Assembly (NCBI GenBank): GCA_965649825.1
Contig: OZ287703.1
Coordinates: 1,111,722 to 1,175,721 of the forward strand
Length of the DNA: 64,000 nt
Direction: 5' to 3'
From: Penicillus capitatus
Taxonomy: Eukaryota > Plantae > Chlorophyta
The notes beneath the pieces are model-generated. The model did no database searches. It saw only the letters and a list, made by a program, of their open reading frames with translations, and had not been told where the DNA came from. The stretch's first letter is position 1, and every line of letters starts with the position of its first letter. Made by a program: the position numbers and the translations under genes. This document shows positions 2,189-59,142 of this stretch, piece after piece.

Positions 2189-3846
2189 ATGAAGAAAATG
2201 CGACGCTGCGTTCTCCTTGCGTGCATCGTCCTTGCTGCGTTCCTCGTCACAGCCAACGAGGCCGCCGAGACTGGCACGCACAAGCCTTACTCCTACGAAA
2301 AGGATGAACGGTGAGCGCCTCGCCTCCGTCGCGTCTGTCGATCTTATGCCGCCAACGTTTGCGTAGTCCAGTGCTGATTCCAGGCCAAGCATGGCGTCAT
2401 AACTGCGACCGTCGTCCTTACATAGCGTTCTTGACCTTGGACGGTGGCGGTCTGCGTGGAATTATCTCGTCGACGGTGTTGGTGGAAGTGGAGAAACAGA
2501 TCAAGCAATACGTCTTGACAAATCTTGAAGATTTCGATTTGGCGAACCCTCCACCGGGACGCGAGAAAGAATCCTACAACTACAACACGATCAACGACTT
2601 CTTCATCTACATCGCAGATTTTTTCCACGGAATCGCTGGCATCTCTGCCGGATCGTGGATTTCGGCTTACCTGGTGACGAAGGGCGGCAACGGCCGGGCA
2701 GAAAAAATCCTCCGACATCCATCGATCGTTGAAAAGTACGGCAGCATTCGTGCCGGCGCTGCAGAAGGACTGCGCGTTTTTTTCTTGGAGTACGGTACGC
2801 GTGTCTATCCTCCGGCGTTGTCGCCCATCTCACTAGAGCCACGAGCCTTCGCCGTGCCCCAACCCAAAGTCAAAGGAATCACCAAACCCTTCTTCAATCC
2901 TAAAGGCCTCGAATGGGTCCTCAAAGAGTTCAACGGCGATGTCAAGCTGAGCGAAGTGCATACCTCGCTTCTCGTGGTGACCTTCGATCTCTCTCGCATG
3001 TCTGCCGTCGAGTTCATTGCGGACTACCTGGATGCAAGAATGAACGCGACAGATGATATATATATCAAGCCTGAGATCTACACAGGTGTCTGCATCAGCC
3101 GAAGCGACATAGCTGAAGACCAACGAAAGGCAGTCGAATCGGCCAAGCAGGCCTCAGGATCGGACTCTGTTGAAGAGTGTGGGATACAAGTGGGTTACTC
3201 TGCCATGGAGAAGCTGTGTGGGTTGGATTACTATGTGCGGGATATCGTCCGTGCCAGTTCCGCATTTCCGATGGTCAATCCGTCGAAACTGGTGAAACCG
3301 TTAAACGACGTCACTAACTACTTTGACATGATTGACGGTGCCATGGTGGGCAACAACCCCACGATGCCGGCCATTGCCTGGGCCTTGTCACACAAGTCCA
3401 TCTCATCCTTCACCAAGACCGCCTTCCTCTCGCTGGGAACAGGCTTTGCAGAAGGATCCAGCGAAGAACTGGCAGACGGCGGCGTCGTTCAATGGGCCGT
3501 TCCTTTCATCGGGCTCATCACGGGATCGACGCCAGAGTTTATGCAAGCGCTGATGGACTATGCCTTCTATGTGCAGCGACAGAACAAGGAAGACATCAAG
3601 CCAAACCAACTGCTTCGTATTCAGTTAATAAGAGATGCCTCGACACCCGAAGGCGCTATGTTGCTGAGTATTACCCCTAACCGTCAACAGGCTCTCAAGA
3701 TGGAAGAGATGGCTGAACAACTCGGTGCGCAGTACCGAGAGAATATCTACCAGTTCGTCGAGACCTTCCTCTGCAAGAAGACCGATGCCATATCGAAGGA
3801 AGACAAAAAAGAAGGCGAGAAAGAAGGCGAGAAAGAGGTGGAATGA
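2189..3846 (+). CDS. Secreted patatin-like phospholipase / lipid acyl hydrolase (paralog 1); join 2189-2310, 2367-3846
   Basis: Signal peptide MKKMRRCVLLACIVLAAFLVTA; 56-nt phase-2 GT-AG intron restores frame (1602 nt total); DGGGLRG, GISAG (catalytic Ser), DGAMVGNNP (catalytic Asp), SLGTG. Confidence 0.92.
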
Positions 3847-6579: not shown

Positions 6580-8084
6580 CTACAGACAAGCACAGGATGT
6601 CGCGTTTTGTGTGATAGGAGTGAGAAGGATTGTTGGACCTCCCGCCAGAAGATTTGCCCAGTCGGATCCTGGAATGCCGTCCATGATTCCTGTCCAAGCA
6701 TCCTGCGAAAAACATCCGCTACGAGATGGCTCGTCCTCTCTCTCGTCGTTATTTGCGCCGTCGCGTTCTCGCGTCTCTCCGTTCGCTACGGTTGAAAAGA
6801 CAGGCGACGTGTCCTTTGCGATCTCCGCTCGAATGCCGTCCCCACACAGCGCCTCTTGTCCGTAACAACCGTCATGGTAATGCGATCCATGACTGCCATA
6901 GACATTCCAGTGGAGAGCCTCTTTGTTGTCGAAGCAGATGGGCACATCACTGCCCAGCAGAAGCTGCGTGTAGAGGTCGACGGCTGGAGCGTCATTGGAG
7001 CACTCGTCGTAGCCGATGAGTGCATCGTATGGACGGAGATTTTCGCTGGAGGCGGCTCGACTGCAGGACGGTTCGTCGAATGGACGACACCATGTCTCCG
7101 AAAGCGCGTCTTCTGAATGAAGTTCGGCGCTGGCGTCCTCTACATGGGCGCTGTCTTGATTCCGGCTGCGTTTCTGACGCTCCTCCATCTGCTGCTCGTA
7201 GGATTCCTCAGACATCTCGATGTTCTCGTCTTTGTACCGCGAAAGAGCGAAGTTTGTCACAGCCTGCATCGCAAGCACGCACGCACACTTTAGACGATCC
7301 TCATAGAGTGCGAGACGCTATACGCGTTTTCCGCGAAATTTGATGGCGGCACGGTCGTAAGCTTCAGCGGCGGCTTCTTCGGAATCGAACGTGCCCAAGT
7401 ACTGCAGCCAAGTGTATGACAAGACGTTTGGCGGCGGCGGCAGCGACGCCGAGAATGTGTTACCAAGTATTTATTGCCAGCCACGCGGCCTATCCTCGCT
7501 TCCCATTTGCCATGTTGGTGATGACGCGTGACGCCACGAAACTTCGAAGCACCTCGCGAAAATCCAGTGCTGCTGCGTCGCAACATCGCCACGACTTCCT
7601 CCTTGTTCATCGACTCCAGCATCTCCCTCTCCGAATCGTAATCCGATACATGAAACTGAACACACAGCACGACACGTCGCCGCTGTCCCATTGCCACAGA
7701 CAGAGACATTACGTTTAAAATGGCCGTCGGGCCCCAGTACGATACAGCCGCACGATCATATGCCTTGGCCGCTTCGATTTCGTTGGCAAAACCGCCTGGC
7801 AGCAAAACGACGTCTTCGTTGCGAGAAAAGCGTCATGTCATGACCGACCGAGATACACTTGCTTGCCACGTGTGCGTCCTTTCGCTCCTTTTATCTTGCG
7901 CACCACACTCGAATCCCAGAGATGCGCTTCGAACTTGCCCGTCCACCGATGTCTGCGTATATGTCGGCTCTCAGCCGAAGTCGTTGTTACCAAGAGACAG
8001 GCGTCATCACTTCGTCACGCCTCTGAATTGCGATGATCCTGCCTTGTTCTTTCCTTTCTGAGCCACACGCTTTGTTTCGTTCAT
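6580..8084 (-). CDS. Double-AP2-domain transcription factor (ANT/WRINKLED-like), multi-exon
   Basis: [22 protein letters not shown]...[21 protein letters not shown]; linker [44 protein letters not shown]; FRGKR/AVTNF; frame is open further upstream so start uncertain. Confidence 0.92.
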
Positions 8085-8414
8085 AACGCACCAAACATCT
8101 CCCACCACACCAGCGGCTCTGAGATCACACTCGGCGATCGACCAACGATAGCAGCCATGCAGCATTGGCGACATGGCGTTGAGGAATGGCCTTTTCTGTG
8201 CGAATGGATGGAATAAGAATGTGGATGAGGGATGGAGATGGTGGAGGAGAAAGAATAGACCTTCGGTCGAAAGAATCGTTGACGGCCGTCTCGGTGATCA
8301 CGAAAAAACGCCGTTCATGTGACCATTAATTCGCCGAGATCGGACGTTCCGTCAACGCATCGATTCGTCGCGACGTTTGCGTCCATCGCGCACCGACCAC
8401 TGCACGATCTCGCT

Positions 8415-9918
8415 ATGGATGATACGGAAGGAGGGTCGGCCTTGCCGCCCATGGAACCGCGCTTCGTCAATAAAGCCCTCCGTGCTCCAGCCCATTGCCC
8501 AAACGATCCACAAGCGTGGTTGCGGGGTTCCACCCATCCCTATGCTCCCTTTTTCGGAAACGCCCTCACATGGGAGAGCCTTGTTTATGACGACGGCACC
8601 ACGTCAGATCTTCTCTCCCTGGCAGAATCCTGACTCCGTTATCGGTTCAGTTATGAAGGGCTTTGTCGCGAAGAGGCTCCACACGGCAAAGGCATCTTGC
8701 ATATAGGCTACGGACCTGGCGGCGGTATTCAGGACACGTTGAGGGGAGACAAGTAGATAACGCCAGCCACGACGGCGCCTCTCTAGATGCCGCTGTCGAC
8801 TAGGTATGAGGGTGAATTCTATGCGGGTTTTGCCCATGGCATCGGACAGTACACCTCGCGTCAAAGACGGGAGATCTACCGTGGGGAGTTCTACGCTGGC
8901 AAACGTCAAGGGTGTGATATTTTGACCTGTCTGTCCACTCCTTCTACTGAAGTGTGATCTCAGGTGTGGAATGTTGCTTAACTACGGGCCATACCAACGT
9001 CTTGTCAAAAAAGGGGAGAGTCCAAAGAAGGCCTGGGAGAAGACCAAAGAAAAAATCCTCGCCCGTGCAAAGTACGGAACGTGGAAGAAGGATTATTTTG
9101 TGGCCGAACCAGACGAACGCGGACAAAAATACTGTCACATCAATGAGATCAAGTGTCTTTTCACTCCGTTGCCGAGGAGATGATCCTTTTGATCGCGATG
9201 TCTGTAGGGGAACACTGGAAGAAGTCGAATCTGTGTTGACACAGGCACGGATGTTTCAGTGGAAGCCAGACGGAGAAGTAAATGCCTTTGATCCCGCGTC
9301 GTTTTGTGATGTGACGGCGTGTCTCAGGTGACATATTTTTTTGCTCAGGACGCGAACGGAATGCCGCTGAACCTGCTGCAAGATCCTCTGCATTACCCCT
9401 ACGGCACAAAGTTTCTGGCGCCGGGTCCTTTGGGTCAGTGTTTCAATATACCCGATGACGAGGATCTGCAGAAAACCTTGTTGAACCATGCCGAGAACTA
9501 TCAACGGATTCATGACATGTACAACCTGGATTACGATCCAGCACCTGGATCCAACCTGTACAAAGCCCTGGAGTACAAAGCGAAGGTGTGCATCTGTGTT
9601 GGTGTCCGTTCGCCTGAGCCGTGGCGTGAGTAGAGGAGAAAGAAGGCGTTAGCAAAGAAGCAGCAGATGGCAGAGAAGACGGCCAGCGCACGAGCGCTTC
9701 CAAAAAAGAAGTGAGCATCGAGAGAGATGCATGGGTATGGTGGATATGGAATGTGATGTGACAGGAGTGCAGCGCCGGCGAGTGTGTCTGCCGCGTCCAT
9801 GGCGATGGGTATTGCGCAGAGATTTGGGAAGACATTGAATCAATGGGGTGAGAATGTGGCGACGGCCGTTCGTCAAAGACCTCCGTTGTCGACCCGACCC
9901 CGCCCTTCAGAAAAATAA
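8415..9918 (+). CDS. TIC100: MORN-repeat chloroplast import component TIC100/EMB1211-like, 8 exons
   Basis: YDDGT/TYEG..PHGKG, YEGEFYAGFAHGIG, YRGEFYAGKRQG/CG MORN repeats; ARMFQWKPDG and DPLHYPYGTKFLAPGPLGQ resemble recalled TIC100 motifs (ARMFVNKPDG; DPQHPYF...MAPGFINQ). Confidence 0.75.
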
Positions 9919-11049
9919 GATGCAATGATAACGCTCACACGGCACAACGTCTTTTCAGTTTTGTGGACAATTGATCTGGGTAATGACATGTGCAAAATGG
10001 GCCAAGGAGGCGGCGAGGCCACAGAGATGACGACCCAGATGACATCCACGCCACACATCGACAGCAATCAACCATCCGGCAGACGACAGGGATACCTCCT
10101 TCAAGACATGTGCCTCAGATACGACACTCTCGAAAGGAATGCAGAAGATCTGCGTTCAGACACAGCCACCCTCTGAGTCTCACTAATATGGTGGGTATCC
10201 ATCTCACTGACCGTGCATGCGGAAGCTACGACCAGAAGGAGGGAGATGCAACGGGCTGCGGCATTGGACGCTGACGGCTTTGCGTAGGCGTGACTACCGC
10301 AGACCCCGTTTGCTGAGATTGGAACGTACTGTGTGTCTTACTGAGCCGTGTGGGCGATCCAGGAGAGAAGAAGTAGTGTCTGTGTGAGGCGACCTGTATC
10401 CATGGCCATTGAAAAATGCACAGCCGTCGGGCAGTCGTTACAGAACACCATACGCGTCGATGTCCACACATAGCCAAAGAGCAGGGCAAAAACACACCAT
10501 CCGCCCAGGAATCCCTACAACGATCCGTATCTCAGGGCTGCATCCCTCGGGTCAACATCGCAGACATGGAAGAGATGACTCAGAACCTGGCAACATCGAG
10601 CGATGGCATCCGATGCCGAAACCACACTGGCTTCCACCGCTGACGACAGTCGATGTGTTAAAGCACGATGCCTGTCGGCGAGAGAGTGCCCACCCTGTTG
10701 CTGACATGGACTGCTCCACTCAGGCGTGATCTCCTCAAACGATCCTGATCACCATGCACCGTTTCGTTCATCGAAAGCGCACGGGCCAGTCATCTCTGCA
10801 TGACCTCGAGGTCCGGATGGTGCGTAGTACTTAACGACGACCGCCGGCATATGCATGGTAAACAGCTTGGATGGTGTGCGTCTCATGTGAGCTGACCTCC
10901 ACACATCATGGCATTTAAACGAACGATTCGCGTTGGGGTTTGTCTTCAGTGAGGCTGTGCATTGGTTACCGTTTCGCCGATTCTTTGCAAGAAGAGATTG
11001 AGCGTTATCTGCACGTCGCGTTCCGCGTTTCTCCGCATTCGATAGGGCG

Positions 11050-12026
11050 ATGCAGTCGACAGGTGTCCGACCGTACTTTGAGAAAACGATGACGTCGTGG
11101 CGCTCCTTCTCGGCGCGACGCGTCCGACACGAGATCGCGGCGTCCATTCAACGCCGAGCCATTGCGTTTCACCCACCAAGACAACAGCAACAGAGAGTTC
11201 TACGTATGCACTATGCACAGAGTCCCATCGACGCATCTCCACAAGTTCGCATCCGCTTCGTGGCCAGAATGGTCACTTCCACTGCCTGTAGCGTGTGGAG
11301 ACGGTGGGCGAGGTCATGACAACGGGCGTCATCTATACCGTCTTCCCAGACACGCTTGTGATTGACGGTCTCCTGTCGTGCATCTGAGGTTTGTCGGTGT
11401 GAGAAAGATGTGACGGTGTAGCGCTGAAATTGGTGGTGGAGAAACGCATTACGGGTATGCCAGTGGTCAACCGAGAAAACCAAGTGGTTGGCGTGGTGTC
11501 CGATTTTGACCTCCTGGCCATCGACTTGAGAAATGAGACGCGCTCAACGAATATCTTTCCATCGATCGAACAATCTTGGGAGGTTCGCGATGACAGCGAC
11601 AGCTCAGTGCCTCTTTCTTTCCTGTATCCACAGGTCTTCCATGACTTGCAGAACATGATTGAAAAGTCCGCGGGCAAAATGTACGTCCGCCGCCTTTGGC
11701 GAAGACGTCAAAGATGTGACGTCGCTGATTTGTAGTGTGGAGGATGTGATGACGGATGATCCGATTGTGGTCAGAGCTGAGACAAGCATCCATTCAGCTG
11801 CCCTCCTGCTCATGAGGACCCGGACGCGACGGTGATGTCGCCGACAGGCGATTAAATTGACGGTTGACGTTGCATGACGTGTAGATTGCCTGTGGTTGAC
11901 AGTGAAGGTCTATTAGTGGGTCTGCTGACACGTCGCGATATTGTGACGGCTGCTCTTGCGGCACGTCGACAACATCCAGAAGCTTTTCCGTCAGAAGACG
12001 GCGATCTCCTAAGCAGCGTCTCGTGA
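11050..12026 (+). CDS. CBSX: Chloroplast CBS-domain protein (CBSX1/2-like), multi-exon
   Basis: Arg/Ser-rich transit peptide; TVGEVMT, ALKLVVEKRITGMPVV...VVGVVSDFDLL, VEDVMT.DPIVVR, LPVVDSEG.LVGLLTRRDIV. Confidence 0.9.
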
Positions 12027-12126
12027 GAATACCGAGCTTGTCTATTTGATTGTGTCCCTGTTCGCTGAACAAGTGCTTTGAAAATTTGTTTGAACAACGG
12101 TCTGTTATCAACGCTTCCTGTGGCAG

Positions 12127-12136
12127 AACTTCCGCT
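12127..12136 (-). terminator. Candidate snRNA 3'-box (AGCGGAAGTT) downstream of the variant U1
   Basis: Identical 10-mer 24 nt beyond stem-loop IV in both U1 genes; function inferred from position only. Confidence 0.5.
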
Positions 12137-12159
12137 TATGGGTTGCTGGGTAATGGGGA

Positions 12160-12319
12160 GCCGAATTGCGCTTAGCGCATAAACGGCCTATCAAAAATTG
12201 TACCGTGGAACCTCCCGAAGGAAGTCCCTGCCAAAGTCGAGCCACAGTGTGCCATGTGACGCAACCTCGACAAACGCGATGCATGCATGAGCACATCGAC
12301 GCTCCGGTCAAGTAAGTTA
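12160..12319 (-). ncRNA. U1: Variant U1 snRNA
   Basis: 5' AACUUACUUG; helix ACCG/CGGU; SL I GAUGU-GCUCAUGCAU-GCAUC; SL II with loop AUGGCAC; SL III GGGACUUCC-UUCG-GGAGGUUCC; Sm site AAUUUUUG; SL IV; colinear with the canonical copy at 13443-13601 and with compensatory stem changes. Confidence 0.88.
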
Positions 12320-12360
12320 ACCCGATGACACGACGGCCATCCTCTTTATCTTCCTCTCCA

Positions 12361-12370
12361 AACTTCCGCT
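12361..12370 (-). promoter_or_regulatory. Candidate snRNA upstream promoter element (AGCGGAAGTT)
   Basis: Same 10-mer about 42 nt upstream of this U1 and about 39 nt upstream of the second U1. Confidence 0.55.
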
Positions 12371-12431
12371 CGACGTTCTCACAGACATTCGATCATCTAC
12401 CGTCTCTTTCATCTAATCGACCTGTCGCCTC

Positions 12432-13382
12432 ATGCCGTCTCTCTGCCGCTCTTTGCATCGCCTTTGCATTGCATCGCTCTCTCCCCGTGTTGCAGGAGGT
12501 CGACCATGGAGATGGAATAGGAGAAAGGATCGGATCTGCTGGGCAGCCTCGTCGAAAGACGCCCCTCAGGTGTCACCAAATCGACAGGGCGAGGCGACGA
12601 CGGATTTTACGCCCTTTACATTAGTGACCTACTCGCACGACCCGGACGCCGTCTGTCAACATGCCGAAGAGATTCTCGTCGACGCCACTCGCGAACACTG
12701 TTTCCGTATCTGGAACAAATGGGACAACCTCGCTGACTTTCTCGATCTAATTGGCGAAGTATTCTCACTCTTTTGTCATCTCACTCTATATCCATTCCTT
12801 TTTACCAGATCTTCCTGGAAGAAGACAATCCCAACAAGGCGATCATGCTCTGCTACTACCGCTATGGTAAGATGCAGTGCTCTTTGGCATTCGGGATAGA
12901 GAGTGGGTCCTGTTGCAGAGCGCTTGCCCATTTTGCAGATGCTGATCGAATTGCACAAAACGGAGATCCAGACGCCGTCGTTCATCAGGTTTGAGAGCAT
13001 GAGTGGAATGCCGTTGAGCGGGATCGTCGAATTTGAAGAGGTCGATGCTGAACACACACGAGTGAAGCTGCGATTCGAACATGCAATGCCGTCCCAACTC
13101 CGAATGGTCTCTGTCGGCCGCGTGGGTGTCGAGAACCACATGAAGACCATCTTGGAACAGAACTTGGCAACGTTCAAGATGCTGGCAGAAGGGGATCTCG
13201 AATTCTCAGATGAGAAATATGATCAAGCACGCGTTTGGCGTGAGATAGAGGAGATGCGTGAGGCCTATGAGCAGTCCGAGTGGATGTCGACCAATGAGGA
13301 GCCGTTTGAGCTGACGGATCTCGAAGACTGCATGGAGCGTCTTGAAGATTCGCCTATTGTTGTGCAGGACGATGAGATGTAA
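12432..13382 (+). CDS. SRPBCC (polyketide cyclase/dehydrase, START-like) protein, probably plastid-targeted
   Basis: HAEEILVDATREHCFRIWNKWDNLADFLDLIGE/IFL... and IRFESMSGMPLSGIVEFEEVDAEHTRVKLRFEH...LEQNLATFK pattern; N-terminal Arg/Ser-rich extension. Confidence 0.7.
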
Positions 13383-13409
13383 TGTATGCGTGGTGATGTG
13401 ACGTTACTG

Positions 13410-13419
13410 AACTTCCGCT
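13410..13419 (-). terminator. Candidate snRNA 3'-box (AGCGGAAGTT) downstream of the canonical U1
   Basis: Identical 10-mer 24 nt beyond stem-loop IV. Confidence 0.5.
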
Positions 13420-13442
13420 TACAGAAGTGACAGGTGTTCGTT

Positions 13443-13601
13443 GCCGAGATGCGCATAGCGCAAGAACGGCCTACCAAAAATTGTACCGTGGGCACTTCCT
13501 TTTGGAAGCCCCTACCAAAGCGACCCGCCATGGTGCAATGGGGACCGCCTCGGTAAACAAGCTGCATTCGTGAACACAGCTAGCCCCGGTCAGGTAAGTG
13601 C
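13443..13601 (-). ncRNA. U1: U1 spliceosomal snRNA (canonical-type)
   Basis: 5' ACUUACCUG; SL I loop GUUCACGAAU (U1-70K site-like); SL II loop CAUUGCAC (U1A site); SL III CUUCC-AAAA-GGAAG; Sm site AAUUUUUGG; SL IV GCCG..UGCGC-UAU-GCGCA..CGGC; about 159 nt. Confidence 0.95.
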
Positions 13602-13639
13602 CGCAACGACATCTCTGCTCCTTACATCGCGTCATGACT

Positions 13640-13649
13640 AACTTCCGCT
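13640..13649 (-). promoter_or_regulatory. Candidate snRNA upstream promoter element (AGCGGAAGTT)
   Basis: Shared with the upstream region of the variant U1 at similar spacing. Confidence 0.55.
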
Positions 13650-13710
13650 TACTTCAAATGCGCAGGCTCTCTCAAATGTGTCATCATTCCATACATCACC
13701 TTCATAGAGG

Positions 13711-14911
13711 ATGCGACACCTCCCACTGAGCAGTGTTCGCCTGCAGGCGCTTCGCCGTCCCGTCCTTCCGCAACGCAGGCGACAGCGGATCGCACCGAGA
13801 AGCGCCGCCAGAGATCCAGGTCATCCCTGTCACATCAGAGCAGCGCTTACAAGGCATGTGACTGCAGGACCGTCCTCAGCCGGACTCTATGTCCCCAACA
13901 TGAATCTCGTTTTCCCAGAGATGCGTCACGGCGGTGCCGAAACGACGGCGACTGGCTTTGACGAGCATCGACCTATGACGCCACCTCCTGATCTCCCATC
14001 TCTTATGCTTGACAGTCGCATCATCTATCTGGGAATGCCTGTAATTCCGCCTCCTCATCTTCTCTCCAAAGAGAAGCCATGTGGCTGCGTCCAGTTGGTC
14101 TCAGCTGTGACGGAGTTGATCGTCGCCGAACTTATCTACCTTCAATACAAAGACGCCACCAAACCTGTGTACCTCTACATCAACTCTTCGGGCACCACCC
14201 GTGCCGACGGAGAGGTGGTGGGATTTGAGACAGAAGGCATGGCCATCTACGATACCATGCAATACGTGAAAAACGAGGCACGCCATCTGCACCATCGATG
14301 TCATTGCACAGCATCTGACGCTTGTACTAGATCTTCACAGCGGGTGTGGGCATTGCCATTGGACAAGCGTGTATGCTGCTCTCTGCCGGTATGAAAGGAA
14401 AACGATTCATGCTGCCACATGCCTCAGGTGATGGCTGTCACATCATCCTCTTCTGTAACAGTGTCGTGCTGCAGCCATGCTCTATCAACCAACTGTTCCG
14501 CCCACTGGTCAGCGTCAGGCCATCGAGATTCAGATCAAATGGAGAGAGGTCCTTGCACAGAAGCAAGATTTTCTCTCCGTTCTCTCTGAGACCACCGGGC
14601 ACTCCATGGCCAAACTCGATCAAGTGATATACTTAGTGCTGTCAGGGGTGGAAGTGGAGATCGGCTGCCGTGACAGGATATGCAACGGCCGTTGTACATG
14701 CAACCGCAGGACGCCATTGAATACGGCATCATCGACCAGATCATCAAATCTGAGACGCAGGAAGACTTGAAGCTCGTTGATGATGTCAAGTCTCCCGAGC
14801 AATGGGATCACGAAGTGAGATCCATCCCATACCGCCGCCGCCGTCCTGCTGACCTTCCTGTTTCAGGCTGGCATTCGAACGATGCCCACACCGCCGCCTG
14901 GGAGCTTCTAG
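13711..14911 (+). CDS. CLPR3: Chloroplast Clp protease non-catalytic subunit ClpR3-like, multi-exon
   Basis: [78 protein letters not shown]; GC-AG intron at 14278-14330. Confidence 0.9.
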
Positions 14912-14989
14912 TAGACAGCGTGATGTGACGTTCTGCGTCGTATGCTTCTTAACGCATCGCATTTCGCTCTATCGTTTCTCGAGTACCTA

Positions 14990-15567
14990 ATGTCGACACC
15001 GACGCAATCTACAGCGCCGTCCGATTCGGGTTATTTGCAGCAACAGCACAAAGTGTTCGATGTTGCACAGGGCCTCAGCGTCGTGAAGTGGCCCCCGCCT
15101 GCCGTTTTCTTAGCGTCAGTGACGTTTCACTGGCCATTAACGCACGCATCGATGCTGCTCGATGAGGAATGTGTGTCGGACATCTTTCCAGCCGCCGGAT
15201 TTCAGTGGCGTCTAAAATTCAAACCAAAAGGAACGGGGAAACAGACATCCGTCGATGATAGCTTCGCTTCATTTCACATCGAGAACGTCGAAGCTGCGAA
15301 AGGGGAGAAGGGACCACTCGCTTCGTTCTCTCTCGGTGCGGCGCCGTCCTTCAGGAAAGTAAACGACAAGTGATGTGACGTCTATACTTTGTAGGTGTGA
15401 TCAATCAAGACTTCCCTGAGCAATGCGTCTGGCGTCCATGTCAGCACGCGTTCTCGAAGAAGGTCCCAGATTGGGGGTTCCTGCGTTTTATTGCCCTGAA
15501 AGATTTGGTCGATCCCAAACGTGGATTCGTGGTAAACGACAGACTCATCGTGGGCGTTCGATTTTAG
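14990..15567 (+). CDS. Small stand-alone MATH/TRAF-domain protein
   Basis: FHW...SDIFPAAGFQWRLKFKPKG...SFHI, then after intron 15336-15394 GVINQ...HAFSKKVPDWGFLRFIALKDLVDPKRGFVVNDRLIVGVRF*. Confidence 0.85.
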
Positions 15568-15633
15568 ACACAAAGTCAGACCGTCTGAGCAGGAAATTTC
15601 GTTCTTAATAGTGAGTGGGGCACATCTATTCAC

Positions 15634-16253
15634 TTATAGCTGCTGTATTATCAAGAGACGAATCGGCCCATGAAAGGACGTCCATAAGGGTCTCAAACTG
15701 ACGATGCTGCATTGGCGGCGGTTGCTCGCCATGAATCATCCAATATAGCAAACTGGACTTGATAAATGTTGCTCACACCTCTCCTTCGTTCTTGTCAAGC
15801 CTTCCCTCGGACGCATGGTGTGGGACTTTGTGGATTTTGACTGGGTCACCCTAAGTGTGCGATAGATTATTGGATTATCACAAAAATGTGTGAGAAACGC
15901 TGTGTTGAGGGGCGTCCACTTCTTGAACACGCTGAACCGTCTTGAGAACAGCGAGGCGATACGTGCCGAACAGATACGCCACATAGCCGTTTTCCCGTTT
16001 CGTCAGAACGCGCTCCATCTCTCCTCCCACCTTCTTGAACTGCTTGTCGATAGTTGTCGACATGTTTCGATGTTCTTAAACGCGGCGAAACGACATGGTG
16101 ATGGATGTAATGAACAACGTCAGACATCGGGACGGGACAGGGAGTCCGCCTGCATTATACAAAGACAAATGCAAGAGGGACGTCACACACGTTTTGCATT
16201 TCATCACCGCTGTGCCGAAAGCGATAGGCGATGCCTCTCGACGAAGTCTTCAT
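15634..16253 (-). CDS. Hypothetical protein, multi-exon, boundaries uncertain
   Basis: Protein-like exon KNIETCRQLSTTIDKQFKKVGGEMERVLTKRENGYVAYLFGTYRLAVLK with plausible GT-AG flanks; no family recognised. Confidence 0.3.
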
Positions 16254-16568
16254 GTATCTGCACCGCCACACTAATGCGGTTGAAATGCCAATCGGACAAC
16301 GTAGCATAACTGAACGTCTATGGTTTGTGGCACTCGCTGAGCTCTGCTTCTCAACATCCTGATTTCTTCCCCGTCATATCAAGAGCCCTCTCGCAGTTTT
16401 AGTCAGAATGGACGGTAGCTATGGTATTGGTCGGAATGGACGGTGTCGAGACTGGACGAACAAGAATTGATGTGTTTATCAAAGTCACATCGCCATTTTG
16501 TCAGACTTCGTCAGTACGCAGCTGTGCCGCTCCATTTCACTGGCCGCCCATTCGACGCGTTGTTATTC

Positions 16569-17328
16569 ATGAATCTCTGGCGCCGAATTATCGAATGGCT
16601 TCGACGGTCAGTTCCCTCGTTTCTTCCCGGCCACAACGAACTGCTTCGTCCGTCATAGACTGTTCTGGCGAAGAGATATGGAACTGTGCATGATTGGACT
16701 TGGCCTCGCAGGAAAGACATCTCTTGTTAATCTTCTGGCGACGGGAGACTTCAAAGAAAACGTGATACCCACGGTACGTCTCCTGCTCTCTCTATTCTCC
16801 CTGACATCGACTTGTCGATCGCGTCAGGTCGGTTTCAACATGCGCAAAGTTCAACGTGGCGGAATTCTGATGAAAGTATGGGATCTGGGTGGACAGGTGC
16901 ATGCACTTTTGTCTCGAGTGGATGTTGCTTCATCGAGGCATGGGTGTGATTTAGAAACGATTTCGCGGCATGTGGGAGCGTTATTGTCGTGGAGTGGAGG
17001 CTATTGTTTTCGTTGTCGATGCAGCAGATCGAGCGAGCTTTGCCGAGGCAACATCAGAACTGCGTGCTTTGTTGCAGAAGCCTTCCATTGAAGGCATCCC
17101 CATTCTCATCGTGGGTAATAAGATCGATATCAGTGGCGCCGCAACGACGGAGGAACTCAGCGCTGCCCTACATCTAAAGGTCCTCCATCGCTTTATTCTT
17201 TTCGAGAGAAAGAAACGTGTGTGTAGCCGTTGAGTGCTGGACGCGAGATGTGTGTCTACTGCATGTCCTGCAAATCGAAAGAAAATTTCGCAGATGTTGT
17301 GGAGTGGCTGGTGCAGCACTCAAAATAA
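16569..17328 (+). CDS. ARL8: ADP-ribosylation factor-like GTPase ARL8, 5 exons
   Basis: [48 protein letters not shown]/..[25 protein letters not shown]. Confidence 0.93.
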
Positions 17329-17399
17329 AGCGATTTCCGCCTCAAATGCGAGGGATAGAGAACGGACACTTGGCATTTTGGACATGTTTGTTGTCTATT

Positions 17400-20300
17400 G
17401 CTTTCACTCTGCGGCAATGTGCGCGATCAGTAGGCTAGTCTAGGCTGCGTTAGACAGAGGTAAGGTAAAAAGACACATTGATGGCATCCGTCAACAATCG
17501 CACGGCAGATGTTCAAACGATGGCTACCGAGATGTCGATCTGTTACAATGATGACATCCGAGATGACTCGTGTGTGACAGAACAATAGAACAGTAGATAT
17601 CAACGTGTGGATGAGCGAGGACAGATCTTCGCTCATCAAGAACACATTCGCGCATTTATACTGGTAGGCTTTGTGACAGAGCATCAAAGACACAGTGCCG
17701 TTCCGAAAGGCGACTTCATCGACTTCATCATCGCATGCTCTTGCATCTCCTTATGAAGTGGTGCCCTTTAACGGGATCTCGACATCTCCGTATCCTCCTT
17801 CGATCTACCACGTGTATGTGGTGGATGAAGGGATATGGTACGCAGCATTTTCACCGTGTCTTTTGACAAGACAACGACAACTTTTGAGAAAAACGCGTAT
17901 ATAATAATGCTCGAATCGGATCGGAGTGCTTTATCGATGCTGTACCCGACTCTTAGAGTTTTACAATTGAATGGTCCCTTTCTCAATTTGATTGCATTGA
18001 CAGTGGAATACGTTAAGGTTGTCTGCGAGTAGTTTATCAATACAATCCCTTTGACTTCGACGCGTGGACCTTTCCGTCACCCCGCCAAACCCAATAAGTG
18101 AGAGAAACTAGACGATGCAGAGAAGCTTTTGAGCTCAAGAGGCAGCAGAAACGAGACGATCTATACCTTTCCGTATCCATCACTTGAAGGCACCTGTCAC
18201 TTTAGGCACTTGGGTTTGTTGCTTGTTCGTTCCTCAACGGAATAGAGTTGGAACACAACAACGATGCAATCGAAGATATACGACCAGACAGAAGAGAGAA
18301 CTACTATGTCCAGATTAAAAATAGTCGTCGTTACGTTCTGAGAAAAACTGCACCTCGCTCGTTGAGAGATGAAGATGATTACTTAGACTTGGTGGACTTG
18401 GGTCGAGTCGTGCTTGGGGAGCCGAGAAAATCAAGCATAGCAGGAATGATCCCCTTAGTGAAATCCGGCATACAACCCCACTGGTCTACAGAAGAGATCG
18501 ATAAAGAGTTATGGAACACTAACACAGAGAACTGGGGACTTCCAAAGACATCTCCTTCCATTTGAAGGTAGACAGACGTTTGAACCGAAGGTCAAGCTAG
18601 AATATGGAGAAGATTGGTGGTTACCGAGCCAGACTCTTAAGTTTTGACTTAGTTCGCATGCTCGCGAGCTCATAGGCTACTGTAGAAAAGCTGCACGGTT
18701 CGACTATCAAATCAAAGAAATCCGTTGTTTCTCGAGCCCAGCTTGTTTATGCCCCCATTCGTTATATGCATAGCTTCGATCCCTTGCCTTGTTCCGTCTA
18801 CATTTGGGAAGAACTGGCATCTCAATCTGCACAACTCTTGAGCTTTGTTAAATATTCTCTCATTTTGACTTTGACTCAGCAGTTTATTTGATTGGCGCCT
18901 CCCCTGATATACTTGATCAAAAGGAGAAGGTGTAAAAACACAATCAAACAAACCATCGCACTGGGATTATCAAATGATACGAGGCGTGGCTACCTTACTA
19001 TGGATATGATTTGAATCTCGAAAGTCAAGAATCGATCGTCGTTGATGGATCGTTCCGACTATAGGTGGTTACATTTGTGTGAACTCTTATGGTGGATTGC
19101 ATATTATGGTTGACATCGTTTAATGCCTTTAACTCGAAGATTGATAAAACATGAGTAAAACCGAGTCTAGTAAGCTCAAGGCTGTATCATCAACCATATC
19201 TCTGTCGTGGGGGATAAGAGAGAAATCGAATTCCCTTGTGATCTTTAATCTTTTGAGAGAAACGATCTTCCACCGAATCTTGATAGTAGGGTATCGCAGT
19301 TGGCGAAGTATAGAGATAGTTAAGTGGAAGGTGGGTCAACCAGAGATATTTGTTTTTCTTTGCTACCACTTTAGTTTCTGCAATAGATCGAAAGAGCTAC
19401 AGATGAGAATGCACTTTGCACGTTACGATACGACAAAGTTGCACACAACTTGTTTCAAAGTCTTCGACAACTAAGATTACAAAACTGCTCTTTGTAAAGA
19501 CAAAAAGGAAGAGTCGTTATGTCAACTCTCGCAGCTCGTGCGTAATTTTCATTTGCATTACAAGTAGACAACGTCGCTATTAATTTTCTTCACACTTCCA
19601 TCATCGCTTTTTCAAAACATGGTTTTAGAAGGCTACCATTTGCAAGGTACTTCCCTTAATGATTTCTTGCTTTTGTGAAGTGACGAGACAAAGCCATTGG
19701 TCAAAGCAGTTAGTTAACCACATTTTCTAACGACTTGATGTTTAGATTGTAATGCTTTGCAGAATGATGGAATGCAAAATTACAAATCTCTGTGACCACG
19801 AGCAGAAAGGTACGTTATCCTCTTCACGAGAGGAAAACAGACAACATACCCATATTGTGAGCAAGCCAAGGCTTGCTATGACTGACTTTTACAAAAACGT
19901 ACCTTTGGTTTAATACATTCTGTGTGTTGAGAGACGTCAACTTTAACAAAAGGACTCAGAAAGTCAAGCTCCCTTAGGAATCGACAATGTACGGTTGACG
20001 TCAATGACCCAGCTAACAAAAACGAAGCTTAGAAGGTCACCGTCTTAAAGAAGACGGCATACAGGAAGGTTGTCGCATTAAGCGAAAGCACTTATTCATT
20101 ATTGGTCTATTAGAGGAAAACGAGCCGGCCCGTTTCCTTGGCTGCGGCAAATTTATACTTGAGACCGCTATCGATGGACTTGCACACTTGTGGACGCTAC
20201 GAACCTTTCCACTCAGTGCAGATACCGAAATCGCGACGCTTCTTTGGATTTCTGCGACTTCTCCATCATCTGTGGCCAATCGATTGGGAAAAGACGTGCG

Positions 20301-20850
20301 GAATCAAATGCCGTCGAATTTTGGGAAAACAGAAAAGATAAGTCTTGTTATAAACATCGTTGCACAAGAACTTGATGATGGCAGTTCAACAATAATGCGC
20401 TCCCTCTCTCCATCTGGACAATGTTAGCAGATCGCTCTCAACGTGAGAAATACGTATAGAGGGGATTTTTCTCAACCATGTGGATTTTACTAGACAGATC
20501 AGCATTCGTTTATGTCTCAAGGTGAAGTGACTGGTCATTAAGTGGTTAGTAGATCTAGAGAAGTTGTTGCAGAACGCGAGAGCATTACTGGAAATGTGGC
20601 GGCTACCTATCGACGCAATCTAGCGGTGGAGATTTGCCAAGATGCTGTCAAACCTTCGTGCCTAGCTTCAAAGAATCTCGCGAAAAGCTCATCATCACCA
20701 TTCTTGATCTCGCCGACAGAACCAATCTAAAGGCAACACAAGAACAAACACATTCACCACTGTCCCTCAAGCAACCGATTTACGTGATGTGACATTGCTG
20801 CGACAAGAATGAGGGAGAGCATGGTATCCAAGCCGTAGACAAGCTTCTAT
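17400..20850. other. AT-rich (about 40% GC in sampled lines), gene-poor island with fragmentary ORFs; possible decayed mobile or foreign DNA
   Basis: Composition drops relative to flanking genes; only short unrecognisable ORFs; no TIR, LTR or transposase motif seen. Confidence 0.45.
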
Positions 20851-20999
20851 TGAGGACGACGACATGCTCGAGGAGTAGTTAAGGGATAGAATGGCGATTC
20901 ATCAACGGCATCGGAATGATGAAGGAAAGATCGTATTACAGACACATATCCAATGCCAGTCTAGAGTCTGGAAGGTACAGTCCAGTAGCAGTACTTGGG

Positions 21000-21991
21000 T
21001 TAAGTCAAATCCTCGTCTTTCTCTTCTTGGCCAGCCTCAGTTATGTAGGATGCGACATCTCCTGTTGGCAGTTTTTGAGCCAGACGCCCGACGCAAGTAT
21101 CAAGGAATTGAAAGGCGACAGTATCCGAGATGACATGTCGAATCGCTTCAGCATCTCCTGAGCGATACGTATCGAGCAAAGCTCTGGCCGCCTTTTGCTC
21201 TTCACTCGTCTGGAAACTCTCTACACCCGAGGCGTCTCGGAGAACGTTCTCTGCCTCCAGTATGTTTTGGCGATAGAGCCAGATGACGATGGCTCCTAGA
21301 TACGAGCGCCCAACACTCACATGCAAGCTTCTCGTTTCACAGACGGCGGCGAATTTCATCAAGAGCGCTGCCGCCTCCTCATACCGTTCCCTTTTCAATT
21401 CATGGTTCACGGCACTGTGATAGAGGTCTCTACCAATCGAGAAACGCTCATCCTGTTCCAATGCATCAATGGCTGATTGATATAGAGTGGATGCCCGTTC
21501 CACATCTGCATCTTCCATCTTGCGTGCAGCTTTGTACAGAGCTTCGCTGCCTGTGAACGCGATCGACTGCCATTCGGTCAGAGAGAAGACCCATACGTAC
21601 CTGCTTGAGGACGTCCTGCTTCGAAGAACATCTCTGCAGCATGTGTGTAGAGCTCTGCCATGGCCACAAAATCTTGCTGCTCTTTTGCCATCTCAGCTGC
21701 CTTTTCATACATCTTCCCAGCATGCCATGAGCTTCCAAGCTGCTCCTGACAGGTTGCCGTCTTCTCATACGCTGTTTTGGATTTCTCCCATGATTTGGCA
21801 GACTAGAATGAACTGTCACATCACATCTTTTTCCCTTTTCTTGCTCTCACTTTGTAAGCATTGGCAGCTTGCTCATAGAGAGGAAAGGCTGCATTCCAGT
21901 CTGGTTTGAGACGCATTTCGAGCAGAGATGCTTTGCAGAGGTGTGTGGCACGACGCATCAGTTTGTCTCCCTCGGATTCTTTCCCCTTCAT
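21000..21991 (-). CDS. GSNAP: Gamma-soluble NSF attachment protein (gamma-SNAP), 3 exons
   Basis: MKGKESEGDKLMRRA...MRLKPDWNAAFPLYEQAANAYK; helical repeats; YLGAIVIWLY; acidic C-terminus EEKDEDLT*. Confidence 0.88.
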
Positions 21992-22115
21992 TTTTGCTCG
22001 TCAACGTAGAACGGCTTGTCTTTCGTACATGGATGTGACTGCAGTCGGGGTATGAAAACGACGTCGGTTCGCACGTGCTCTACACATTCTACCGCCATTT
22101 CATAGATTTGAACTC

Positions 22116-25100
22116 ATGCAGCCTCGTGGCACACAAGACTTGGCAAACGCCAATAACAGTGACGGGTACTGTCTACGCCATATCTCGGACACGCCACACA
22201 CACAAGCAAGCCCTGACGGACATCCCTCTGACCGAAAACTGGCCCTGCAGGAAACGGACTTGAGCCTTAAGAACCTATCGGCAGCTCTGCTCGATGCGAC
22301 CTTAGGAGCCTTACCTCTATCCCCAGAACGCATTTCTAACGTTCACGGGCCGTCATTGGAGGTTACCAAAATCGATACCCATACCGCCGATATAAAGGTG
22401 ATTCATGGTTTCCGAGCGCATTTTCGTGGATCCATGAAGAAGAGACAAACGGAAGAGACATTTGAGAACTGTTTAATTCAAGCGCCAGGGGAACAGTTGA
22501 AAAAGAGGGTGTTGAGTCGCGGGAGTCTCAGCTTTTCGGATTTGACCGAACTCGATAAGACAGCACCCCGTTGCATCTTGCATGCTTCAGCCCACAGATG
22601 CCAATGGGAGATACACCCAAACGAAATCAAACTCGGTCGCCGCATCGCAGTGGGGGGATTTGCCGAGGTCTTCATTGCAGAATATCAGGTTGGGTTCTCG
22701 CAGAGATTCCAGACACAGGCATCGATCCACGGCATGGACTGTAGGGTACCATGGTGGCTGTAAAGCGCATGTTTGATCACGACGCCACAGCAATCGAACA
22801 GTTTAAACAGGAAATCACGATTCTTGCCAAGCTGCGTCATCCCAATTTGATTCTTTTTATGGGATACTGTCTTACACCTGAGCTCTCCATTGTGTCAGAG
22901 TTTATGCAAAAAGGGTGTCTCTATAATGTGCTTAGAACGCAGGATGGTGTGCCGTTAGCCGATATACACATCGAAGTCATTGCCGTGTCTGTGGCTAGAG
23001 GAATGGCATATCTGCATTCCAGAGACCCACCGATTCTGCATCTCGACTTGAAGTCTCCCAACATTCTGATCGACAGTTGCTGGCGCGTGAAGATCACAGA
23101 TTTCGGTTTGAGTCGACTAAGATACCGAACCCTCATCTCTGGTAACATGGGTGCGCACGGAACACCGCACTGGATGTCGCCGGAGACGATCCGTGGAGAT
23201 CAGATCGATGAGAAGAGTGATGTTTACAGTTTTGGCGTGATTCTATGGGAGCTCTTGACAGGAAAAGTTCCTTGGGGAAACATGAATCCTATTCAAGTCA
23301 TTGCCGCAGTGGGATTCAAGAAACGCTGTTTGCCGCGACCAGACCACGCAGATGCCGTCCTGGTCGCACTCATGGAACGTTGCTGTGCACACGACCCCGT
23401 CGAGAGACCTTCATTTTCAGAGATTTTGCAGATGCTGGATCGGCATTACGCTGAAGCACCGAAGCACAAGATGGCGAAGTTGGCCCTGGGCAAAGGAAAC
23501 ACATCCGAGTCCGTTGAGCCACCCTCACCCGCCGTCGGAACTGTCGTCGAAATCTCATCACCAACAGACCTGAGTTCACCGGGTTACCAAGCACAACGGC
23601 CATCGGATTCGGAAATTGGGGATCCTTTCAAAGAGGGACAGCGACTGAATACCCGTAATATCGATCGCCTACAGGCGTTTGAACACGATCTCCTTTCCCA
23701 ACAGAGCGATGCGACGCCGGGTACCATGGCCTCACCGTTTGCTCAGTTAGCCAGTACACCAATGGATAAAACGACCTCATCTGATGATGAATCTGTGCTG
23801 GACACACGTTCATGCGATGCTGCACTGGAGAGGCCGTCAAATGACGATGCATCTGGACCCACACCTCCAGCGAATTTTTCACCTTTCGCTGCCTACTCTG
23901 CCATGCCGTTTGTAGATTCTGGACAGCTTCCAGTTTCGGCGAATGCACCTGAAGGCGACTACGAGACACAAGAAGGTGCCACGACCACGGCACCTGCCAC
24001 GACAGAACTGCGAGGCGACGTTTCTGCCTTTGCGCACAAAAGTCTCAAGAGTCAGGTGTCGACTGTCTATGATGAGATCCTTCAAAGCCATGCATCGTCT
24101 CAGCAAGGGTAACCTCCTCTTCTGATGTCCTCCTCTCACTCTTTCATACAGATCCAGTCGACTCTCGCATGACGATCAAGGCACAACATTTTTTCACTTC
24201 GATGCTAAAGAAGAAGGAGGGGGATGGAAAATTAAAGTCGCTGATGTGGAGGAAGAGATGCCACCGTCGCAGCACGGTCCTCGGCGCGGCGAGAGTTCCT
24301 GTTCGATCCGTCCCACGTCTCTCATCGACGATGCGGGACCAAGTGCGCGACCTCCATCTTCGATGGGCACGGAGAGAAGTCACGAATCTCTCGATTTCGA
24401 CGGAGATCCAGAGGATCCAGTGCCGCCGACCGAAGACGCAGATCGTGCCACCGTTGGGACATTCATGATCCCTCCCATGCGTTTTCACTATACGCACCGT
24501 ATGGAATACTCAACCTCTCCGAGGAATTCTTAACTGCGCGAAGTGACATCTCTCAATCGATGTTGTTGCGTGTGTAAATCGGACCCCTTTAATATGTTCT
24601 ACGAGGATGAATTCGAAAGTGCGTGGCCCCTATGGCAAGAGGGCATGAATGAGAGGCGCCTCGTCTCGATTGACGTCGCCGTTTGCATCGACCGTCTATG
24701 GACGGCGCTTTTCCAAACGGGCTCAGACTTTCAGGTCAGACCATTCAGACAGCCAAGGCTCGGCAGTCTCGACAATGGGATTGCTGTACAGAAACGAGCA
24801 AACGAGACGCGTCGCTATCGTCAAGTGGAAGAAACGAACTGGACGCTGCATTTCTCAGATTTGCCAACGTCATCACAGTTTCAATGGACACATGCACCCC
24901 TGCCTCTGGTGGAAAAGACTCCTTCTGTTGGCATGATGCGCAAAGTGTGACCCAAAGCATGAGAGACACCACAGCCGCCATTCTGTACCCAGGTGCTTTT
25001 CACCTGTCCAGGCAATTCCATGCATCCAGCGTCCTTCCGCACGGAGCAAGTGGAGCGATGTATGGAGTACATCCCTGGACGTCGCTTTGTTGTGGATGTC

Positions 25101-26006
25101 TGTGTTCTCTCTTCTCCTATCTACTGTGATCGATTCCGTCCCATTGTTCGGTAAAGAAAGCGTGATCGCCATCGTCATCCATCATGCATGGATGTGAGAG
25201 ATCAGGTTCACGGCAGAGAGGCGTGCATCCAAACATGTCCATCTGACAGTGGATTCCCAGCTCGTCTTTGTGGCCAAAGTCAATTTCGTTCTCAAACGTT
25301 TCATCGAATCCAGCGCACGGAGTATGTGCGATCGCAGTGTCCTGTTCAGTGAGTGGCATGTCGTTGTGATCACTAGGTGGAATGGATGACAGTTTCAAGA
25401 AATGGCTCGAGGCGCTCGAGCAGACCTTTCCATCAGCATTACCTAATAATTCTTCCAAAACACAAAGACACATCCACAGACGATCCCAAGACCGGAAGGA
25501 TATCAAGTGAGCATCCTGTACGGAAGGGAGTGCGTGATCGATGCAGGTGTGATGAAAGGTCACATCGTTTGATGGACGTGCCTACCGAGATCGAAGAAGA
25601 AGAGGATGACGAGTCCGTGCGGCGGCGGCGGCGATCCGAAACCGACTCCCTTGCCCTCGCTGTACTCATTCTCTCTCTGTCACTATCCCTTCTGCGCTTT
25701 GTCTGCCTTCTGCTATCGCTCCCTCAGAGGTACGACCTCAATGCCGTCACATCATCTCGCAATGCTCTCGACAGGATGGTCACTGTGGCGCATGGATGGA
25801 TGGCACGCATTCCTTGGAGTCTTGCTCTACAAGGATGTTGCGTCGTGCTCGTGACGGGGATAATATATTCAAGACTCTCTCCTCTCCTAACCCTCTTTGG
25901 CGAAGCCCACTGTCCTTCCAGTGGTTTCGTTTTGTGTTTTGCAATCTCTTTCTTAACGACTAGCTTCATGCGACACGTTCTAGGTTCCACGAATCCGAAT
26001 GTGTGA
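22116..26006 (+). CDS. Raf-like (CTR1/EDR1-type, TKL) protein kinase fused to a C-terminal VASt lipid-transfer domain and TM helices
   Basis: Kinase: IAVGGFAEV, VAVK, HLDLKSPN, DFG, GTPHWMSPE, DVYSFGVILWEL..PWG.MNP.QV; phase-2 intron 24110-24152 keeps frame into VASt-like exons (LWTALF, FVVDVCV..SPIYCDRF, VDSQLVFVAKVNF.LKRFIESSARSG...FKKW); hydrophobic C-terminus. Confidence 0.8.
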
Positions 26007-26365
26007 TATTTGATTGATCCCCTGTATTTTCAAATTGGATTGGTCAGGGAAGCAGGCGCGAAGGGACCATGTGTGACCTGTCTTGTCAACAATGTCAAGT
26101 TGATGGATGATCTTCTGCCGTCGTGGAGTGGTCAGGCATTCGTCGAAGGGTACTGCTGTCACATCAGTGTATCAGCGGAAGGCTGCCGTCATTGTCACTT
26201 CAGGGCACTGACAGTTTTCGTTTGAAGTCACGCGTTCAGCGACCATTCGTTCGCAGCGACTCCCTCGTAGCTACACGTCGTGTTTACGACGGTATTTCAC
26301 GTCGTGCTGTCAAACGTGTCGTTGTCGTCGTCTCTGTTCCGAACGAACGCACCGAGACCGACTCC

Positions 26366-50756: not shown

Positions 50757-51348
50757 CGTTGCTGTTCAGAACGCTCCAACGAATAAAAGCCACCGTGCCA
50801 CTCCAACAGCACTCAGACTCTGCACCACTTCGAGGATGACGATGGAATCAAATGAACGCTGGCCTCTCATTAACCCCAGGGATTATTGGCGGCTAGATGG
50901 CAGATCACTTTGTGATCGGCAACTTTTCCAAGGAATGGCGATAAGAACTCTCCTTCGACTGAAATCCTATGTCGATACAAGACAATAGAGAAAGCAAGAA
51001 CACTGGGAATGAAAGGAGATGTCACAGAAGACACATAAAACGCATGTAATCCGTTTTCCTTTTTCGGTGGGAGTATTGAGAACTCGAAGTCTTTTTGACG
51101 CACGGACGAATAGTCTCTTGCGATGCCTCTCAGTCTTCCGGTGTTCGAAACAGTCAGATGCCCAACTCTGATTTGCATCCAGGGGTCACATCTTTATTTG
51201 TGTTGCATACCCACGACGCATTTCTATCGAATACGAGAGGCATGGAGCTGCCGAAAGCGCCCACGAGCGGGGTTCTTCGTGGACACCTGACAAACGTGAC
51301 CGTTTGAACGATATCTGCTTTTCTCTGCGATACTTTCCACGTGCGATC

Positions 51349-58884: not shown

Positions 58885-59142
58885 ATACAAAGTGGATCTG
58901 TTCTTCTCATTTATGACATGTAATAAAGACCGCTGTTGAGTGCATTTGTCGCAAAGAGATAATGACCGCGATCCACGCGCGTGCCCTTGAGAAAGCGCAG
59001 AAATTGATGGAGAACAAGGACGCGAAGAAAAGGATCCCGGTGTGATGCATCGTTTCTTTTCTCTGGTATATGGGGTTCCGTTTCTCAGGGTGACATGAAA
59101 TGCTGCCATGCTGCGTTTCGTCAGACACTCTGCAGTATAGAC

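Follow-up and report, generated by a model that had tools for sequence, protein, structure and literature searches.

Does the second U1 snRNA gene of the green alga Penicillus capitatus encode a working U1 and, if so, does it read a different class of donors from the U1 gene beside it? The question arises from a 64,000-nucleotide stretch of the genome (hereafter the window), in which a canonical U1 gene and a divergent one lie 1.1 kb apart, both on the minus strand. To our knowledge, few RNA sequences of eukaryotes vary as little as the U1 5' end, in which C9 is universal. The single-stranded canonical 5' end ACUUACCUG is complementary to CAG|GUAAGU; SL I of the RNA binds U1-70K, and the AUUGCAC of SL II binds U1A. 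snRNA paralogues usually homogenise, and distinct functions for variant U1s have thus been doubted. The initial annotation of this DNA took the divergent copy for a structurally intact paralogue, not a decayed pseudogene, with a 5' end tuned to AA|GT donors.

The 64 kb window was scanned for RNA families with cmscan and Rfam release 15. The U1 model RF00003 matches the variant over its full length (model positions 1-166) with 75.9 bits and an E value of 5e-17, above the gathering score of 69.5, in the covariance-model check that had been proposed along with the annotation; the canonical gene, also covered over the full model, scores 92.4 bits. Even at E<=0.1, the window holds no RNA family other than these two U1 matches and no further snRNA gene. 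The parts of both genes are collected in Table 1. The 5' end reads ACUUACUUG in the variant, which keeps eight of the nine positions of the canonical sequence, including the intact intron-pairing hexamer ACUUAC. The difference is a T at 12311, the C9 position in human numbering, where all four canonical genes compared here carry C. The true transcription start may lie 1-3 nt upstream of 12317.

The two loops that contact proteins differ as well. The SL I loop is GCUCAUGCAU in the variant and GUUCACGAAU in the canonical gene, with fixed U-to-C and A-to-C differences; against the Rfam consensus GAUCAaGAAG, the variant agrees at 7 of 10 positions and the canonical loop at 8, the UCAnG core being kept and A35 (human numbering) replaced by C. 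In SL II, the variant has no consensus U1A site, and the loop context and closing pairs are preserved. The upper stem of SL I is GAUGU/GCAUC instead of GCUGU/GCAGC, the Sm site is AAUUUUUGA instead of AAUUUUUGG, and the SL IV stems of the two genes are the same. Direct reading therefore finds every difference that the initial annotation had listed for the 5' end, the SL I loop, the SL II loop and the SL I stem.

Table 1. Features of the two U1 genes and of the gene between them (window coordinates)
Feature	Position	Strand	Basis or remark
Variant U1 snRNA gene	12159..12319	-	ACUUAC from 12317; RF00003, fold z = -5.1, syntenic orthologues
5' splice-site recognition sequence ACUUACUUG	12309..12317	-	Direct reading; identical in 3/3 variant orthologues
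SL I loop GCUCAUGCAU	12283..12292	-	Position of the U1-70K binding loop; variant lineage keeps GCUCA(U/A)GCAU
SL II loop heptamer AUGGCAC	12249..12255	-	Position of the U1A-binding AUUGCAC
Sm site AAUUUUUGA	12191..12199	-	Fits RAUUUUUGR; invariant in variant orthologues
SL IV	12159..12188	-	9/9 pairs invariant across 7 genes
Upstream box AGCGGAAGTT (core GCGGAAGT) of variant	12361..12370	-	Ends 44 nt before ACUUAC
Downstream box AGCGGAAGTT of variant	12127..12136	-	Core from 23 nt after U1 3' end
Three-exon protein gene between the two U1 genes	12450..13382	+	Synteny anchor; first intron donor GAA|GTATTC, -1A
Canonical U1 snRNA gene	13442..13601	-	ACUUACCUG from 13599; RF00003, 92.4 bits
Upstream box AGCGGAAGTT of canonical U1	13640..13649	-	Ends 41 nt before ACUUAC
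Downstream box AGCGGAAGTT of canonical U1	13410..13419	-	Core from 23 nt after 3' end

The variant also folds as a U1 RNA. Taken alone, in a single-sequence minimum free energy prediction, it forms helix H, SL I-III and SL IV at -69.4 kcal/mol (z = -5.1), and the four-way junction of helix H, SL I, SL II and SL III, followed by the single-stranded Sm site and SL IV, is reproduced. In an alignment of seven U1 genes, 47 pairs were scored, and 99.6% of the cells are paired. Seven of these pairs are changed on both sides, compared with 0-2 in slid-register controls; two are in SL I and five in SL II. The compensatory re-pairing claimed in the initial annotation for three stems thus holds for SL I and SL II and falls away for SL III, where the changes are one-sided and wobble-compatible (G-C to G-U and U-A to U-G) and the UUCG loop is conserved in the variant.

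The locus can be followed into related genomes. Both U1 genes sit in the intergenic spacers flanking a three-exon protein gene, the whole lying between a CBS-pair gene and a ClpP/ClpR-like gene. Homologues of the three-exon gene, at 84%, 62% and 54% identity, were found on contigs L001, L002 and L003, all of which are syntenic with the window over about 20 kb and carry the canonical U1 at the expected place (93-95 bits with Rfam). The presence of the variant was judged in L001 and L003, the L002 contig ending before the expected position, and in both it occupies the syntenic place (L001 9226-9386, 75.9 bits; L003 9277-9437, 73.5 bits). Three genomes make up the sample of relatives; a further contig, L004, was reached through a Raf/CTR1-like kinase encoded in the window, and its flank is too short for the U1 region. 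The best named matches of this kinase are green algae at about 50-55% identity, Picocystis and Cymbomonas coming before core chlorophytes and these before land plants; the window further encodes a double-AP2 protein, a plastid-type CBS protein and a Clp protein. By these matches, the source is a chlorophyte, and one whose lineage has been little sampled.

Wider searches returned little. A JGI metagenome pattern scan for U9-type U1 genes with any stems gave no match, and neither did a second JGI scan, which allowed both U1 types of this clade; the clade is thus missing from the scanned data. A protein search with the spurious open frame that runs through the variant U1 returned the L003 copy, with no further contigs or transcriptome assemblies. 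Automated "protein" calls do lie over the U1 genes of the relatives (L003 9184-9504, minus strand; L001 10568-10732, minus strand), P0125 being a 106-aa ORF across the L003 variant. Such spurious ORFs populate protein databases and could in principle be used to find snRNA loci by protein search.

Each of the two lineages keeps its own set of functional sites. All three variant orthologues have ACUUACUUG, GCUCA(U/A)GCAU, AUGGCAC, AAUUUUUGA and the SL III UUCG loop, and all four canonical genes have ACUUACCUG, GUUCA(C/U)GAAU, AUUGCAC and AAUUUUUGG; the SL II heptamer is invariant within each lineage, and the 3' loop bases vary. The lack of an orthologue with conserved U9 had been named beforehand as a result that would speak against the variant: the syntenic copies of L001 and L003 do have U9, together with the Sm site and the two altered loops. 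Between the window and L001, the variant is 100% identical (159/159), and around the locus the identity is 64-76% in introns, 66-91% in intergenic DNA and 86-88% in exons. Between the window and the distant relative L003, the identity is 93.1% for the variant and 93.7% for the canonical gene, and about 55% for the proteins neighbouring the locus. By these figures, the variant evolves no faster than the canonical gene. With an identity of only 66-73% (about 71%) between the two paralogues, the duplication long predates the split of these genomes.

The eleven differences between the window and L003 variants fall in a bulge and at variable loop positions, or change a closing pair from U.G to U-A, a C-G pair to U-G and, in SL II, an A-U pair to G-C, beside which one A.A mismatch has arisen. 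This means that, apart from the SL II A.A mismatch, substitutions within the variant lineage are confined to structurally tolerant positions. The diverged flanks argue against a recent gene conversion of the relatives' copies. There are no tandem repeats around the two U1 genes, and a reading of the pair as the remnant of a tandem array was set aside. Covariation and conservation together are the mark of a functional RNA under purifying selection, and the pseudogene reading is thereby effectively refuted. The initial annotation was right, then, to see a structurally intact paralogue instead of a decayed gene, on the agreement of RF00003, the fold and the conserved orthologues. We conclude that the variant is very probably an anciently duplicated, selectively maintained and functional second U1 paralogue. 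snRNA paralogues normally undergo concerted evolution, and their orthologous groups rarely persist beyond the genus (PMC4291461); yet these adjacent copies have stayed this different, and therefore selection for divergence is suggested.

The variant carries the same external gene signals as the canonical U1 of the same genome. Each of the two U1 genes has the exact 10-mer AGCGGAAGTT on either side, upstream and downstream, and these four minus-strand copies are the only ones in the 64 kb. In all seven genes of the four genomes, the core GCGGAAGT is unchanged at both places, in flanks that have diverged beyond alignment. The distance from the end of the upstream box to ACUUAC is 41 nt in all canonical genes and 44, 44 and 42 nt in the variants, and the downstream box starts 23-24 nt past the 3' end in 7/7 genes; the downstream box of the variant is identical to that of L001 at 10/10 positions, and the surrounding spacer diverges. 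An A-rich, (A/T)TAAAGAG-like stretch about 25-30 nt upstream is a weak feature. From position and conservation, the upstream box is probably the proximal snRNA promoter element of the lineage, and the downstream box probably a signal for 3'-end formation or termination. Since the variant has both boxes, it would be expected to be expressed as the canonical U1 is. Were the start site fixed by its distance to the box, the variant RNA would be 1-3 nt longer at its 5' end, as in (UU)A-ACUUACUUG.

That a single 8-mer, GCGGAAGT, in the same orientation, occupies both the promoter and the 3'-box position is unusual. Presumably, the box also differs from the land-plant USE. The green-algal USEs reported so far include ACCCATAA, CCCRTAA and ACCCAYAW (PMC8287931), and the box is unlike any of them (PMC8287931). 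A copy of ACCCATAA directly before the downstream box of the variant was judged coincidental; it is not conserved in L003. Further copies of GCGGAAGT at window position 40393 and at L001 17229 were likewise dismissed, as they lie in ordinary-looking sequence with no RNA-family match, about two per 64 kb being expected by chance.

The next question is whether the genome offers donors that U9 would read. Introns were inferred from adjacent conserved exon blocks: every frame-preserving GT/GC...AG junction of the window and of the distant orthologue was considered, and the pair with the best-aligned junction peptides in the same phase was chosen, with no donor model beyond GT/GC...AG. L003 and L002 served as informants; L001 was left out because it is too close, so that introns align too and junction calls become unreliable. 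After margin and length filters, 31 window introns of 45-62 nt were accepted. The genome is rich in such very short introns, as seen throughout window positions 7300-27100 (for example 12759-12808, 14278-14330 and 26540-26592), and in L003 they measure about 37-50 nt.

In the window, the base before GT is G in 18, A in 8, C in 3 and T in 2 of the 31 introns; when the orthologous introns of L003 and L002 are pooled with them (n=69), the counts are 39, 17, 7 and 6, that is, 57% G and 25% A. Among the inferred donors, 72% have A at -2 and 80% have A or G at +3, and about 10% are GC donors. Positions +4 to +6 are nearly uninformative (+5G in 33%), and the donor information is mostly exon-side, in -2A and -1G/A. 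All 17 pooled -1A donors are AA|GT, compared with -2A in 26 of the 39 -1G donors (Fisher p = 0.0055); in the window alone, the counts are 8/8 and 9/18 (p = 0.023). The -1A donors are not compensated on the intron side, with +5G in 6/17 of them and in 12/39 of the -1G donors. In modelled 9-mer duplexes, the mean energy with -1A donors is -4.45 kcal/mol for the variant ACUUACUUG and -1.95 kcal/mol for the canonical ACUUACCUG, a modelled preference for the variant of about 2.5 kcal/mol; with -1G donors, the values are -2.99 and -5.61 kcal/mol. A sizeable donor class therefore fits the variant and not the canonical 5' end (8/31 in the window, 17/69 pooled), in a small sample that comes from one 27 kb syntenic block and in which orthologous introns are not independent.

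These counts raise the plausibility of the proposal that the variant is tuned to AA|GT donors, as part of a two-U1 splicing system, and the modelled duplex energies favour the variant for that class. U9 also wobble-pairs with -1G; "broadened" is for this reason a safer word than "tuned", and C9U could be nearly neutral for donor choice. Codon usage (GAA, CAA and AAA before phase-0 introns) or a general preference for -2A could account for part of the AA|GT pattern. The C/U preference at -3 that the initial annotation had added does not appear, the -1A donors having C in 7, G in 6 and A in 4.

We propose the following mechanism. The variant would be transcribed from the shared snRNA-type promoter, assemble an Sm core and form a U1-type snRNP. 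Its 5' end ACUUACUUG would pair uninterrupted with NAA|GU donors, at which canonical U1 has a C9:A mismatch, and therefore the two U1 RNAs together would cover the AG|GU (about 57%) and AA|GU (about 25%) donors. As positions +4 to +6 are nearly without information, pairing on the exon side should carry unusual weight. Through the fixed changes in their loops, SL I and SL II may bind U1-70K-like and U1A-like proteins with a changed affinity or have other partners among them; considering the established roles of SL I and AUUGCAC, and that each loop is conserved within its own lineage, each is presumably still read by a protein. In our judgement, the best-supported reading, with an even chance of being right, is a functional second U1 through which the recognition of 5' splice sites is extended to, or divided in favour of, AA|GU donors. 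For donor-class partitioning or broadening as the actual role, we put the chance slightly below even; specialisation of the variant for a donor class is plausible but unproven. A bolder and more tentative model is a dual-U1 major spliceosome, in which C9 and U9 snRNPs with different SL I and SL II loops, and possibly with distinct U1-70K-like or U1A-like proteins, would divide the introns between AG|GU and AA|GU and be kept apart by selection against gene conversion over 1.1 kb; we would not expect it to hold in full, although it deserves to be named.

The variant could instead be a functional U1 isoform with no donor-class specificity, serving a particular condition or stage or the dosage of U1, or selected for protein binding only, with C9U tolerated through the U9:G wobble. 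The wobble is possible under established base-pairing rules, the loops differ as much as the 5' end does, and a switch between U1 paralogues without a proven change in splice-site choice is the commonest known situation (PMC4291461, PMC10645366, PMC10870369). However, U9 is invariant in the variant lineage and C9 in the canonical one, the copies have long remained unhomogenised at a distance of 1.1 kb, and the 25% of donors with -1A are exactly the AA|GT class that fits U9, with a strict -2A. Such an isoform is a reading we hold to be unlikely, if well worth keeping in mind. Alternatively, the RNA might act outside splice-site selection, in the control of premature cleavage and polyadenylation, in the regulation of a few transcripts or in the titration of U1 proteins. 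For human vU1s, roles beyond splicing have been proposed (PMC3561869), and the altered SL II loop may have lost U1A binding, given the specificity of U1A for AUUGCAC; against this, ACUUAC, helix H, the Sm site and SL IV are intact, as 5' splice-site binding and snRNP assembly require, and the data point to no specific alternative target, which makes such a role improbable. Finally, a decaying or silent pseudogene that only looks intact might be suspected from the Rfam score below that of the canonical gene (75.9 vs 92.4 bits) and the non-consensus protein-binding loops, but is scarcely credible for a gene that is identical to L001 at 159/159 positions where introns are 64-76% identical, is 93% identical to L003 with its stems paired bar the one SL II A.A mismatch, evolves at the rate of canonical U1 and has both flanking boxes conserved at fixed spacing.

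How does a second U1 that extends donor recognition compare with known systems? Variant U1 genes are well known in animals (PMC3561869, PMC10870369, PMC8457000, PMC10645366). Like the variant described here, the human vU1s and the embryonic and adult isoforms of mouse, Xenopus and Drosophila are extra copies with changes in the U1-70K and U1A loops as well as in the region that reads the 5' splice site; their promoters and 3' boxes are of the canonical type, and a cap and bound Sm proteins are known for some of them (PMC3561869, PMC10870369, PMC8457000, PMC10645366). For the human variants with altered 5' ends, mostly no dedicated splicing role has been shown (PMC3561869, PMC10870369). The animal variants differ in that they form families under concerted or birth-and-death evolution, whereas the alga has a single divergent paralogue (about 71% identity) at one syntenic site. 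A recent study of tunicates, in which 95% of introns are non-canonical, notes that these animals did not resort to a divergent U1 duplicate (PMC13326754).

U1 RNAs with an altered 5' recognition sequence are rare. In Entamoeba (ACAAAC), Mastigamoeba (ACGUAC) and Physarum (ACAUAC), as would be the case for the variant, the U1 5' end is altered to match an atypical donor class (bioRxiv 10.1101/2022.06.08.495308). In Entamoeba and Mastigamoeba, however, it is the only strong U1 candidate that is changed, on the intron side (+3/+4), whereas here the canonical U1 is retained and a second U1 is changed on the exon side (-1). For Physarum, both standard and modified U1 variants are mentioned without details (bioRxiv 10.1101/2022.06.08.495308).

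Two further systems are alike in concept. U11 of the minor spliceosome is a second Sm snRNA that reads 5' splice sites and serves a distinct intron class beside U1; the analogy is functional only, since U11 has no sequence or structural relationship to the variant, which would read GU-AG introns. The possibility that the variant is itself a U11 was set aside, as it scores as U1, keeps ACUUAC and was seen to have no U12-type features. The "left-handed" and "right-handed" 5' splice-site classes of LUC7 share the concept of exon-side versus intron-side complementarity to U1 (bioRxiv 10.1101/2022.12.07.519539), and the donors here are strongly exon-side; in the LUC7 system, U1-associated proteins separate the classes with one U1 RNA, whereas two U1 RNAs are proposed here. 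In a limited literature search, no deeply conserved, syntenic U1 paralogue of algae or plants was found described whose recognition sequence is changed on the exon side.

The locus thus presents a natural, long-lived U1 pair that differs at a donor-pairing nucleotide and in both protein-binding loops, in a genome with a large class of AA|GT donors, very short introns and little intron-side donor information. Provided that the variant is expressed, one could test directly whether the major spliceosome can use more than one U1 specificity for different donor classes, and the pair would lend itself well to the study of how U1A-like and U1-70K-like proteins and their loops evolve together. The GCGGAAGT box common to both genes may represent a new snRNA-gene signal, that of a green-algal lineage so far unsampled.

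Several other features of the window were recorded. Between an Arf-like gene and a SNAP gene, positions 17330-21000 form a stretch of about 3.6 kb of low GC (down to 0.42) with few ORFs; between matched gene ends, the gap measures about 55 nt in L003, about 50 nt in L002 and about 2.9 kb in L001, and it looks like an insertion or expansion specific to the lineage of the window and L001. Strand asymmetry is marked at 32000-36000 (AT skew 0.13-0.18) and at 58000-60000 (GC skew 0.13, AT skew 0.12), which suggests purine-rich coding or repeat content on the plus strand. At least four ORFs encode patatin-like phospholipases (PF01734), at 2311-3846 on the plus strand and at 49276-50793, 52283-54229 and 54754-56544 on the minus strand; with three of them clustered at 49-57 kb, they are a local gene-family expansion.
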